A stretch of 64,000 nt of DNA, from assembly GCA_964035545.1 (NCBI GenBank), contig OZ037767.1, positions 2,491,680 through 2,555,679 of the forward strand. Reading direction: 5' to 3'. The stretch's first letter is position 1. Every line of letters starts with the position of its first letter. This stretch comes from Bugula neritina. Taxonomy: Eukaryota; Animalia; Bryozoa. This document shows positions 13,839-19,246 of the stretch, one piece after another. The position numbers were made by a program, and so were the translations under genes. Below the pieces are notes generated by a model. It saw only the letters and a program-made list of their open reading frames with translations, made no database searches and was not told the DNA's origin.

Positions 13839-15128
13839 ATTGTAGTGTCTGGTTTCAAGGATATAAAAGATAATTAGCAAATACTTCATTAATGATATCA
13901 CAAGAAGTAAAAATAGAAAGCATTCCACTATTAATATTTTTATCTGGTAGAAATTCCACTTCAGTGAAGTGAGTAATTACACTAAGTTTTCGGATATTGA
14001 AGCAAGAATATATGAAAGCATTTATAAACATATGCATTTAACTTTTAAGTCATCTAAAAGCACAAGTACTGCTTTTGGAATTTTTCACATCCATAAATTG
14101 TAAAGTGACCTCAATAGGTCAATAGTTCAAGGACAACTTTGCATGCATCATTTAATGCAGCAAATAAAAGAGATTAGAATCTATGGTGAATATTTGGAGC
14201 TAATATTTTGCACTGAGATATGCAAACCCCTACTTGAGAGTCAGTACATTGTTTTAGTTTGATTAATTGCTGAATTTGCCAACTCTGAGAATAATAAGTA
14301 ACAGGCTGTGATAAGAGCGAAGTAACACTGGAAGGGAGTCTACTCGAATCTCATATCCTATTGTTAACCATTGCATTAGCATTAATTGTACACCACAATA
14401 TCGTATGTTTCAGCTTCAATGCATAGCTTCAGAAAAATTAATTAAATTACAAATTTATGATTTGCCACTAGCTGTTTTAAATTTGCTTAAGTTTTGAGTT
14501 ATCTGTAATTTTAGAAGTTCTTTTTAAATTTAAATTGTATGAGTCTGTGCATACATATTCCAGTACAATTATAAACTCAATTACATTTTAATAATTTGCT
14601 CATAACTATAACGAATTAAAACGATATGTACTAAAGGGAAAATGTATAAGATATAAAAAAATCAGGACACACAATAATTCATTAAAATGATCGTCATTTT
14701 CTACTAAGATTATATAATGTATTTAGTCGCACAAATTAACAAGTATTTAAATCACCAAATTATGATAAATTTGCCAAATAAAACTGTATGAAATCATCAA
14801 GCAGTTAATGTATTGGCAAGCATTTGAAATAAACAGAGTTATCTCCCCTATTGAATGACAAAGTTAGACTGTAAACAGAAGGCAACATATAACAACATAC
14901 TTAATTAGATAGATCATTAAACTATTTACTCTATTTATTTATAGATTGTTTTGCTCATATTACTCAAATTAAATCCATTAAAAAATAGCAAATTTAGTTT
15001 ATGAATAAAATATTGTTATAGAAGTGATTCATGGCTTGTTGCCATGTCACGCTAGAACAATTTCTTATGAGGTTCATTACATCATCACTATTTGAATCTT
15101 ATTGGTGGAACCCAGCATCGTGTTGGTG

Positions 15129-15162
15129 TATATATAAACAGTACGGTAACATTTCCCAGTAT
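15129..15162 (+). promoter_or_regulatory. TATA box plus initiator-like element of the secreted Cys-rich gene
   Basis: TATATATAAA at 15129-15138 and CCAGT with its A at 15158 (27-29 nt downstream), 65-80 nt upstream of the candidate ATGs. Confidence 0.55.
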
Positions 15163-15237
15163 TATACTAGAAAGCTCACGCAAGTAGTTGTGATATTAAT
15201 TTTCTATCGGGGTATTTGAATAATGTTTAACTACAAA

Positions 15238-17321
15238 ATGCTAGCCTGGAAATTGCCTATTTTTATAATCGGCATGAGTCACTTCTATATAGCTGGTAAG
15301 TTAACCATATAATTGTATAAAGAAGAAGTAATTTTTAATTGATTTATATACAATTTGTTCAAGTAAGGTACTGCATACAGAAACTGTAACATAGGATCAA
15401 TATTCCAAATATTGACACTATGAAAAAATGGTGTTTTTAAGTTTATTTCTTAGAGTATACTTTAATATATCACCCTCAAAATAGTAACAGATATTTAAAA
15501 TCTTGTTAATCAACGTCAATTTCTGAGTTGCTAGTTTTGTGTTTTCAGCAAGGTTTATAGATATTGTCAACTGTTACTATGGTAGAGCTTGAAAATACGA
15601 TAATAAAATAATTTTAAATAAACATCTAAGAACCAAGAGGCTCAACTTGGCATATACTAGCAATTAAGCTATAGTAAAGTTATAAGCTTGTAGAATATCA
15701 ATATAATATGATGCATCAATAGTGTAAAAAGTCATGATTGCTTGACTGCTTTTAATTTACTTTGCAAGTTGGTTTGATTTGTTTGAAACTTTAAAGCAGT
15801 TTTCATACAATAGTAATGTACGTAATCGAATAAAGGATCTTTTTAAAAGGAAAAGCAAAATTAAGGTTTTTAAATCACTTTTAACCAACCTGTTTGCAGT
15901 TTTGCTTCAAACTTAAACGCAGGCATTTGGTAAAACAATATTTTTGTAATATTAGCCAATCCAACTCCAAGTGTCCCAGAATGCCCTGCTGGACTTCTAC
16001 CTCACACCGATCCCTTCGGCTGTGCCTTTACACATCTGTTCCTCACTATAGATGATAGCTGCCCAAACATTCCAAAGGACGAGAGGGACTGCAGGTAAAA
16101 GATTTATGAACCAACTAATAGCATAGGGAATAACTCCATGAGATACAAAACATTGTTCTCAGACTATAAGAACATTTGTTTTCAATTCTTTGTAGAGATC
16201 AAAAATGTGGGAACCCTGGAGTATATTGGGTATTAAAAGGCTCTGAAGAAAGAATTCCCAAGGAAATGTGTAAGCAGAGATTTCCGTTCTTTACTCTACA
16301 ATCTTAACATTTCAGTTCTTTACTTTACAAATATTTTAAATAGATTTGCCGATTCAGTTTTATAAGCTGATTATTATGTTTTAGGTTGCTCGGATAAGAT
16401 TGTATGCGAGGATCAATGTGCGGGTAAAACTTGTACCAATACTGCACTGAGAGAAGCTGGCGCTTATTGCAAGTAAGCTAGAAGCTAGAAATATTTGTAT
16501 TGTAGCTCTCCACCTAGCCAAAACATTGGTAGCAAATATCACTAAAAGCAGCACAGAGTTGGATATGACTAAGTACAGTATTTGCACGCACATCTTTATC
16601 TGAATCTCAAATCCCAACCACTGCACTTAGTGACCACCAACTCTGTGCTGCTTCAAGTGACATTTTTCTGCAGTATTACTAAAACATTCATCATAGCTTC
16701 TCTTTAGCATTTTTTCTGTAGCATTAAATAAATATAATTCTTTAGCATTTCTGTAGCAGCATCTTTTGCTTTACTATTTAATCCACCCGTACAGAACTCA
16801 GTCTAGCTACCATGCTCTGTGGCTATTACAATATTGCTTTAGCATCACATGATTATTAACCCATGATGGTAGATGAGTTAACTCAATGAACTTATCAGGG
16901 GAATGGTTTACCATTGAGTGGCAAACATGTAATTTTATAAGAAGAATGACCTGATGAATATATATTGGTTTGCAATGTACTAACACTATCTTAGATCCCT
17001 TTCCACTATCACCAAATGAACTGTCTTATTTTAGCTGTCTGTATTGGTAGATGACCTACTAAATATGTCCCAGGAGATAAATACTATGGACTCCTCTCTC
17101 AAACTGAGACTCTTAATAATTAAAAAGATTGCAATTCATCTTATTATTTATCTTGTATATTTTGATTGAATTGTAGAATGAACCCGTGTCATAATGAATG
17201 TAGAGTAGAGTGGTTTCTTGGAGTCTATGACGTATCGGTGGAGTGCGGAGGGAGCGCTCCAAACACAGGCGAGTATTACCCACCGGGATCTGAGTCTATT
17301 AGATTCGAGGCTCATGTATAA
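15238..17321 (+). CDS. Five-exon gene for a secreted 167-aa, 14-Cys protein (exons 15238-15295, 15956-16094, 16196-16269, 16385-16472, 17177-17321; alternative in-frame ATG at 15223)
   Basis: All introns are GT-AG with matching phases (1,2,1,2) and the joined 504-nt frame is open: MLAWKLPIFIIGMSHFYIAANPTPSVPECPAGLLPHTDPFGCAFTHLFLTIDDSCPNIPKDERDCRDQKCGNPGVYWVLKGSEERIPKEMCCSDKIVCEDQCAGKTCTNTALREAGAYCKMNPCHNECRVEWFLGVYDVSVECGGSAPNTGEYYPPGSESIRFEAHV*. Exon 1 is signal-peptide-like. AATAAA at ~17875. Confidence 0.85.
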
Positions 17322-18338
17322 CTTTCAGACAATCTAGTTTCAACATTGGAGCAATCTTTAATTAATACTGTGGTTTTAATTCATAGGAATCACTTGTGTG
17401 GTTATCTACAGCAACTGACGACTTTTAATGCTAAGTCCTGATTATATTTTTGCATGTTTTTCAATAGTGCATTTGAATTGCTTTATACGGTTTCCTTATA
17501 AATGTTATTTAAGTATTAATATTATTTTTGTAAAGTGCTACAGTATATATTTTATTTATTATTTTGATAGTCATAGAGTTCCGAGTTGATTTATTTTGAA
17601 AGAGCTTCAACACTTTTTTAATTGCATAATAACCGATTTTCTCCCTGTAACAGTATATGCATGATAGATATTACAATATTATATTGAAACTAGTTTGGTG
17701 TAAATATTGTATATAGGCTACCACAGACACATCAGTACAAAATTCAATCACAGATATTACTTCTCAAAGCAATATTTTTTATTTCTTCATTTATATAGTC
17801 ATGTGGTCAGTGTTGAGTAGATGAGTTTATTTGTATTCTTTTTGAATATAATTACAATGCTATAATACCTCTAAAATAAAATATAAAATCAATTCGAAAC
17901 TGAAAATTGTGTTAAGTAGGTTTAACATCTTCTGGCCCACCAGTGAGATCATACAATAAGTATATTCTTATGAATTTAACTGATGATTACGTGTTGCTGC
18001 AATGCCAAAGCTAGGATCACGTCACGATCTCATGCCAATGGTGGAGGGCGGGAACTTGCTGGGCGGTCAAGCGTGTAAACTAGTCATTTATCTGCATTTG
18101 TACCAGTCACTAAGTTGTGCTCACCCCTCGCATCAACATACTGCATAATCGCAATTTACTGGTACAATAATTCTTTTTTCTATGTTAGAAACGTGATAGC
18201 CCAGTATTACACTGGAATTACAAGTGAAGTGTTTCCTAATCAAAGCATTACAGTAGAGTGGTAACGAACTCTACCACTAGACTCAATGTGATCAGGCCTT
18301 GTAGGCAAAAATGGTACATCTATGGTTATCTTTCTACT

Positions 18339-18607
18339 GAAAGGAAGTTGAACGTTTTCCCATAATCCATCCCGATTTATGTTGTTTTTTTCAGCCTATA
18401 GCCTAGGTTTCTCACTTTTTCTTTGCAGTACAGTAGGGGTTAAAAGTACCCTGGCCCTAGCTGATAATAATTGACTACTCATAAGAACTTATGCTAGATA
18501 ATGCATTACATGATTTGTCATATTATAGAATATACTGCATTATATAATACCCGTATGTATTATCAGCACTTCTCAGTCTATCGTATTTTAGACTTCAATA
18601 TAAATGT
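18339..18607 (+). repeat. Dispersed repeat, copy 1 (direct repeat of 20701-20958)
   Basis: GAAGTTGAACG...CCCATAATCCATCCCGATTTAT...GACTTCAATATAAATGT is shared between the copies, roughly 90% identical by eye. Confidence 0.93.
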
Positions 18608-19246
18608 AGTTCTCTTATCCAACCCCAACTTGCGTAACCTCTGAATAGTGATTCTACCAAAATAATGCTGGTATGAGAGAATGATACATGCATAGTATCA
18701 ACTCTCCACTGGTTATAACCAAGTTGTTGTATGACTTTTCTAGCTGCTAGATATGGAACTACAGTCAAACTGAACAGAGCTGGATAGTTTTACCATGAAA
18801 ATACAACCCAGTACAGCCACAACAACTTATCATTACAAACAGAAATTTGATATTATTTAGTTTATTCTCAGCAACATAAGTATATAGACACTCTAATAAA
18901 ATGATTTGTAACAGCAAAATAAAATATAATGTAATGAATGGACGGAGAAATTTTGGACGTGTAAGAAAATTAAATAAAATACAATATAATAATATATTTA
19001 TAATATAATATAAATAGATGCAGCTTTTCCAATGGAACCCCGCAGTAAAGTAAAGGTTACATAATAATGGTACTAGACCAAGTTTATAGGACGGAAAAAT
19101 TTAACAAAAACTCTGCAAATGCAAGCTACTCATTGGGAATATCAAAAGTTTTGTGACACAGCATAGACCAATACACAGATATTGTAGCTTCATTTGAGCA
19201 ACAGAACACTATATATACTTTCTCAGAGTCTATCATAGCCTTAGGT

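Follow-up and report, generated by a model that had tools for sequence, protein, structure and literature searches.

Few animal phyla have received as little study at the molecular level as the bryozoans. Within them, Bugula neritina draws attention for a chemically defended symbiosis and for cryptic species. A conserved signal, a conserved cysteine framework and a variable loop are found together in venom peptides, and the same pattern is seen in the reactive-site loops of inhibitors. Here we describe a gene with this combination of features in a stretch of 64,000 nucleotides of B. neritina (contig OZ037767.1, positions 2,491,680 to 2,555,679 of the forward strand), which we call the window throughout. 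We consider it fairly probable that this is a genuine, complete, single-copy B. neritina gene coding for a secreted, acidic, disulfide-rich protein with a recognition-type role. The window comes from GCA_964035545.1, the Darwin Tree of Life assembly of 216.00 Mb from Plymouth, UK (PMC11480708), and our searches of this genome covered the whole assembly (216,009,554 bases). The gene lies on its chromosome 3, at 2.5068-2.5096 Mb.

The closest described counterparts of the gene are two models from a diverged B. neritina lineage, EB796_001962 (P0002 in our searches; 152 aa; KAF6039729.1, A0A7J7KNH4) and EB796_022334 (P0001; 115 aa; KAF6019367.1, A0A7J7J0L3), both entered in GenBank as "hypothetical protein" under the US draft assembly GCA_010799875.2, whose gene models were produced by AUGUSTUS with transcriptome hints (PMC7576161). 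They represent the same gene as that of the window and have its introns in common, and one of their contigs also has the same dynein neighbour; they differ from it in a later start and, respectively, in an altered tail and a frameshift. No name, domain or paper was found for either model in databases or the literature. Databases thus already include the gene, but unnamed, uncharacterised and mis-modelled.

Structure and constraint of the five-exon gene

A sequence-only reading of the window had proposed a five-exon GT-AG gene with matching phases, hidden from the open reading frame (ORF) track, and its exon structure is borne out: when the exons are joined with a local script they give a single open frame, and the splice sites are kept in related copies. 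All four introns are GT-AG and have phases 1, 2, 1 and 2, with the donors GTAAGT, GTAAAA, GTAAGC and GTAAGC in that order and with pyrimidine-rich acceptors ending in TAG. Each exon almost fills its local open frame, and G+C content is 0.34-0.52 in the exons against 0.27-0.34 in the introns. The proposed length of 167 aa is right if translation starts at the second of two ATGs, but a conserved in-frame ATG lies five codons further upstream and brings the frame to 172 aa. A TATA-like element and the downstream AATAAA that had been listed with the gene are both there (Table 1), the latter kept in both related copies that reach that far.

The joined frame contains the 14 cysteines that had been counted in this small cysteine-rich protein, with spacings of 12, 12, 9, 4, 20, 0, 5, 3, 4, 11, 4, 3 and 14. 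Its N-terminus carries K5 and K10, then the hydrophobic run LPIFIIGMSHFYIAA (residues 11-25, with a Kyte-Doolittle mean over 11 residues of up to 1.9), and then I-A-A before N26, with small residues at positions -3 and -1; the boundary of exon 1 coincides with the predicted signal cleavage after I-A-A. By inspection and hydropathy, the first exon is thus signal-peptide-like, as had been proposed, and the protein is probably secreted. Its predicted mature form has 147 aa, 16.2 kDa and an isoelectric point (pI) of 4.8. The further proposal, that the mature part consists of two related modules, is not supported: the best local alignment between them scores 24, against a mean of 23.2 (standard deviation 4.3) for shuffled sequence (p 0.39), and we reject an internal tandem repeat.

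Five related copies from US B. neritina could be compared: L004 and L005 from GCA_010799875.2, L006 and L007 from Joint Genome Institute (JGI) metagenomes, and L024 from a Logan contig. For the first four, alignments to the window span the entire region, at ~88-90% identity, and L004 and L005 are the only ones among them that reach exon 5; for gene features, L024 was read only across exon 4. At a non-coding divergence of ~10%, L004-L007 keep both ATGs, all 14 cysteines and every GT-AG site that they cover, and L004 and L005 keep the TAA stop. The only coding indel of L004 is one of 3 nt in exon 5, which stays in frame.

In the core of the protein (codons 1-148 without the variable loop described below) we counted 18 synonymous (Sd) and 14 non-synonymous (Nd) differences, a ratio of the non-synonymous to the synonymous proportion (pN/pS) of 0.19 (binomial p 4e-6). 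Against the US copies, the signal exon carries four synonymous and no non-synonymous substitutions, and exon 3 a single amino acid change (N77G). Over the whole joined frame, compared with a copy ~10% diverged, pN/pS is 0.27, whereas in the two wrong frames it rises to 0.77 and 0.70, with 10-12 stops; the corresponding ratio of substitution rates (dN/dS) between the window and L004 is 0.32 overall. The contrast between 0.19 in the core and 0.7-0.8 in the wrong frames therefore indicates a constrained coding gene, and the coding constraint for which a dN/dS check had been suggested appears in the true frame only. We are confident that the locus is a real protein-coding gene.

A decaying or non-functional gene, or a frame that is not translated, would explain three other features of the comparison. 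Frame-breaking indels occur in two of the five related copies, as a 1-nt deletion in exon 4 of L005 and a 7-nt duplication in exon 3 of L007; the tail (codons 149-172), with six non-synonymous changes and one synonymous, looks unconstrained; and at the nucleotide level the exons (86-95% raw identity) are no better conserved than the introns (88-94%). However, decay would leave neither the low pN/pS of the core nor the wholly synonymous changes of the signal exon, a pattern that the wrong frames lack, nor would it preserve cysteines, starts, aligned splice sites and, in both copies reaching exon 5, the stop at such non-coding divergence, and we hold it to be very improbable. The indels of L005 and L007 could be assembly errors or null alleles, and the tail is either an unconstrained appendage or, if the splice of the GenBank model is real, non-coding. 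Between the UK and US sequences, the most conserved parts of the region are the two ends of the gene, namely the 5' flank (96% identical) and the putative 3' untranslated region (UTR; 95-97%), which hints at possible regulatory constraint.

With exon 2 as query, a full HMMER scan against 1.84 billion representative proteins returned three B. neritina proteins with 87-89% amino acid identity. One of the public models, P0002, is an AUGUSTUS prediction that arrives independently at all four junctions. P0001 and P0002 both begin at the third methionine, so that most of the signal peptide is lost, and P0001 is frameshifted because of the 1-nt deletion in exon 4 of L005, after which it runs into intron 4. 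Two other database entries, P0003 and P0006, represent ORFs from genomic contigs (of JGI metagenomes and the Logan contig); these cross intron 1 unspliced and enter exon 2. The gene was hidden, then, in the sense that the ORF track does not display it, but imperfect GenBank models of its related B. neritina copies already existed.

A hypervariable loop between Cys10 and Cys11

What is new here is a hypervariable loop of seven codons between Cys10 and Cys11. The six copies carry four versions of it: TNTALRE in the UK window, IVPALAE in L004, L005 and L024, GDTVLRE in L006 and GDTVLAE in L007, and the pN/pS of the loop is 3.8. Between L004 and L006, eight of its 21 nucleotides differ, compared with seven of 1133 non-coding positions (p 4e-13). 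L006 and L007 agree at all 1136 non-coding sites compared and at 353 coding sites elsewhere, yet differ in three adjacent bases of codon 118 (AGA vs GCC). Residue 52 is a second variable site, being L, I, M or V across the copies; outside the loop, L004 and L006 have three coding differences, of which two sit in codon 52.

When a window of 21 nt is slid over ~4 kb, the loop is the top cluster of differences in four of five US pairs, which are those with differing loops. It contains 8 of the 33 differences between L004 and L006, 5 of 21 in another pair, 5 of 9 between L007 and L024 (over 3.9 kb) and 3 of 6 between L006 and L007; in the fifth pair, L004 and L024, the loops are identical. The genealogy of the loop conflicts with that of its flanks, for L004 and L005 have the same loop at 3.6% non-coding divergence, while L004 and L006 have different loops at 0.6%, and AGA at codon 118 is common to the UK genome and one US haplotype. 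To judge from these alignments, the pattern suggests old alleles that may have been swapped by short recombination tracts. We found no donor sequence for the other loop versions in the UK genome, and a search for more loop haplotypes with the ORF antisense to exon 4 gave no match. Metagenome contigs scanned with a DNA pattern that is present in L006 and L007 likewise yielded none. On this evidence, we regard the case for diversifying or balancing selection on the loop as evenly poised.

The hypervariability might also be an artefact of chimeric assemblies, of PacBio errors or of a collapsed, unassembled paralogue, in which case the gene would be a plain conserved orphan. The sources of the sequences lend this some weight, L004 and L005 coming from a PacBio and Illumina draft and L006 and L007 from metagenomes of possibly pooled material; L006 contains a run of N, and the frameshifts of L005 and L007 mean that the assemblies are imperfect or that null alleles exist. 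Smaller clusters of three to four substitutions are also present in non-coding DNA in the comparisons with L004. However, the loop is the top outlier between contigs outside the PacBio-based draft as well (L007-L024 and L006-L007), every loop variant keeps the frame, and codon 118 shows the AGA/GCC alternative again in independent assemblies and the UK genome. Moreover, the chromosome-level UK genome contains a single copy of the gene, and no sequence there could have served as donor of the other versions. An artefact therefore seems quite unlikely to us, and we retain the reading of a truly variable loop; with six copies, partly from pooled assemblies, it is a strong lead and not a demonstration.

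Table 1. Position in the window of the five-exon gene, its parts and nearby features
Feature	Position	Strand	Remarks
5' flank	14900-15128		96% identical between UK and US
TATA-like element TATATATAAA	15129..15140	+	~85-95 nt before first ATG; identical in L004-L007; putative promoter element
Exon 1	15223..15295	+	start codon (ATG 15223, 172 aa; alternative ATG 15238, 167 aa) and signal-peptide-like segment; ends in phase 1
Exon 2	15956..16094	+	Cys1-Cys4; splice sites conserved; weak likeness to N-terminal half of HYR
Codon 52	16036..16038	+	second variable site; from alignment of five copies
Exon 3	16196..16269	+	Cys5 and start of split Cys6 codon; GT-AG sites conserved
Exon 4	16385..16472	+	completion of Cys6 to Cys11; GT-AG sites conserved
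Hypervariable loop	16435..16455	+	codons 113-119, between Cys10 and Cys11
Intron 4 hairpin	16534-16665		51-nt arms
Exon 5	17177..17321	+	Cys12-Cys14, then 24-residue Cys-free tail and TAA (17319-17321)
GC donor used by EB796_001962	~17282		inside exon 5
Putative 3' UTR	17322..17880	+	ends in the sole AATAAA 3' of the stop (17875-17880), the putative transcript end
Terminal exon of EB796_001962	18745-18789		14 codons
Dynein heavy-chain gene	~19200-56000	-	convergent with the five-exon gene

HYR domains and other secreted protein families

Families were searched with single exons or with the database orthologue P0002 as queries. For the five exons and P0002, Pfam gave zero families at expectation values (E) up to 10, EGF, Kazal, TIL, WAP, ShKT, Sushi and VWC included; a sequence search of the PDB gave a chance match only (E 1), and a feature search of the ESM Atlas with exon 2 and P0002 no usable match. 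A structure search of the ESM Atlas with a model of P0002 (predicted template modelling score, pTM, 0.62) found no neighbour above a TM score of 0.35, and a word-indexed search of 5.8 billion proteins with P0002 returned three B. neritina clusters only. Pfam, PDB, ESM Atlas and two protein searches thus agree with the sequence-only reading that no named family can be assigned. Its description of the gene as standing alone is likewise supported by the paralogue check, in which exons 2, 4 and 5 each match their own locus only in a search of the whole UK genome, where the gene is single-copy. Lineage-specific the gene apparently is, having been seen so far in B. neritina only; the sole match elsewhere is a weak one, between exon 2 and the first half of the HYR repeats of two bacterial proteins. 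The invertebrate cysteine repeat that had been proposed as a likeness was not found: these bacterial HYR proteins are the only larger repeat proteins matched, and they match through exon 2, in the first of the supposed modules, and not through the one with eight cysteines.

The match raises the possibility that residues ~29-103 are a very divergent HYR (hyalin-repeat, Ig-like) domain with an extra cysteine pair, followed by a small cysteine-knotted C-terminal domain; the protein would then belong, in minimal form, with the HYR proteins of adhesion or matrix instead of being an orphan fold. The phmmer search with exon 2 against the 1.84 billion proteins retrieved the two bacterial proteins at E 2.3e-4 and 7.1e-4, through seven and five repeats, respectively, which Pfam assigns to HYR/HYR_4C. 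Exon 2 and these repeats have in common the pattern P-x-x-x-C-P ... T-D-P-x-x-C ... D-x-C-P and similar cysteine spacing over the first 36 mature residues; the 36 residues from the third shared cysteine to the next fit the HYR repeats, and in a MAFFT alignment the module pairs with HYR over its full length. In a profile comparison with HYR, hhalign gives P 0.0026 over 36 columns, and a local hidden Markov model (HMM) scores 7.3 bits, a value reached by 0.4% of cysteine-preserving shuffles (p 0.004, post hoc).

Several results speak against this possibility. The phmmer E-values sum over five to seven near-identical repeats, the later tests were post hoc on the best of 1.8 billion proteins, and the hhalign probability is only 11%. 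Neither Pfam HYR (PF02494) nor HYR_4C (PF23237) matches the exons or P0002 at E 10, and genome-wide scans with both did not report the five-exon locus. The motifs of the second half of HYR, G-x-x-x-V-x-Y-x-A-x-D and G-N, are absent from the protein, so that this half is not recognisably similar, and the extra cysteine pair sets it further apart. Structure prediction gives no support, AlphaFold2 reaching a mean per-residue confidence (pLDDT) of 41.2 with an HYR-seeded alignment and 40.8 from the single sequence, both too poor to show any fold; nor did the ESM Atlas model have any neighbour above TM 0.35. We therefore consider membership of HYR unlikely and keep to the reading of a family-less secreted protein.

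We also looked at the loci of the same genome that do bear HYR domains. For the loci examined, a link to the five-exon gene is rejected: tblastn found nothing below E 0.05, and a D-E-x-x-C-x4-C-G likeness to one HYR-bearing exon is at chance level (p 0.25). Three of these loci (L009, L011 and L015, on chromosome 2 at 24-29 Mb) have HYR exons followed by six-cysteine Sushi-like exons, without similarity to the five-exon gene.

A classical secreted effector, that is a toxin, a protease inhibitor or an antimicrobial peptide, would use the variable loop as its reactive or target-binding loop. The conserved signal exon, the fixed cysteine framework and the hypervariable loop between cysteines are in line with such a role, and the gene is an orphan confined to one chemically defended animal. 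As a general analogy, cone-snail venom peptides resemble it in their invariant signal exon and cysteine framework and in the concentration of replacements in an inter-cysteine loop. They differ, however, in size, the protein of the window being much larger (147 residues, large for a toxin peptide, and 14 cysteines), as well as in the absence of any sequence similarity; the window gene is moreover single-copy, with no expanded array, and has most of its mature protein under purifying selection. No inhibitor, toxin or antimicrobial family was matched in Pfam or PDB. Neither a cationic antimicrobial peptide nor an expanded toxin family fits well with the acidic pI and the single copy, and an effector of this kind appears improbable to us.

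Interpretation, surroundings and meaning of the locus

The interpretation that we prefer is that of a secreted recognition-type protein. Removal of a signal peptide of ~25 residues would leave an acidic extracellular protein of 16 kDa, which up to seven disulfides may hold together as a rigid scaffold, and this scaffold would present the variable loop and residue 52 as a contact surface. If the loop is indeed displayed in this way on a disulfide scaffold, the protein would therefore be an extracellular binding or recognition molecule. Candidate roles named in the sequence-only reading were defence, toxin, protease inhibitor and adhesive; the hypervariability of the loop, a feature also of recognition or defence proteins, favours binding or recognition. 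The protein could bind an external partner or one on a cell surface, and the identity of this partner would drive diversification, be it in defence, in self/non-self discrimination or in some other form of recognition. Balancing or diversifying selection would maintain the loop alleles, and recombination over short tracts would carry them from one haplotype to another. A function in recognition or defence, taken by itself, is a tentative proposal from sequence features.

A number of observations weigh against this interpretation, beginning with the frame-breaking indels, the apparently unconstrained tail and the level of exon identity, treated above, and the failure of AlphaFold2 to show a fold. 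The features of the signal peptide (charged n-region, hydrophobic h-region, residues at -3 and -1) were judged by eye and hydropathy only, and the protein collections searched yielded no protein derived from a transcript. P0002 replaces the exon-5 tail by a 14-residue exon ~1.4 kb downstream, reached through a GC donor. As for the loop, the sample is six copies, the US contigs, as products of pooled or metagenomic assembly, may be haplotype mosaics, and the smaller non-coding clusters in the comparisons with L004 show that it is not the only place where substitutions gather. The alternative terminal exon of P0002 is 96% conserved, like its surroundings; it could be an error of prediction or else mark an alternative 3' end.

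Downstream of the five-exon gene and convergent with it, the window contains a dynein heavy-chain gene on the minus strand, represented by ORF fragments with typical dynein motifs, and a gene with a Dynein_C domain (PF18199) occupies the equivalent place on the syntenic US contig (L005). The UK genome and the US draft differ by ~10-12% across the whole 5 kb around the gene (14000-19000), with a synonymous divergence (dS) of ~0.21. This lies far above the within-species level and, as far as sequence can tell, would fit different cryptic species within the B. neritina complex. In the US draft itself there are two contigs for the locus, 3.6% apart, which are haplotigs or come from pooled individuals.

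Intron 4 contains a strong hairpin (-51.9 kcal/mol, z -7.3) whose arms are 80% complementary. As one of at least 44 copies of a ~130-nt repeat dispersed over all chromosomes, it is most likely an element of the miniature inverted-repeat transposable (MITE) type. We rejected it as a microRNA, given this dispersal and a score for Rfam mir-16 of 24.7 bits, which is below the cut-off of 36.5 and probably spurious.

In its most specific form, our interpretation would be that of a polymorphic recognition protein with an undescribed fold of seven disulfides, whose old alleles of the loop, and of residue 52, are balanced across cryptic Bugula species and exchanged in very short conversion tracts. In all these particulars together it is speculative and rather doubtful; if true, it is what would be expected of a locus for self/non-self, mate, or symbiont or pathogen recognition in a colonial animal. 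In any event, public models of an orphan gene can be corrected, with a full signal peptide and a conserved stop, and selection on the gene is shown. Should the loop alleles be neither old nor balanced, this would be one more lineage-specific secreted cysteine-rich protein, an ordinary kind of gene; if they are both, B. neritina, a colonial lophotrochozoan, would offer a recognition locus that is compact and tractable.

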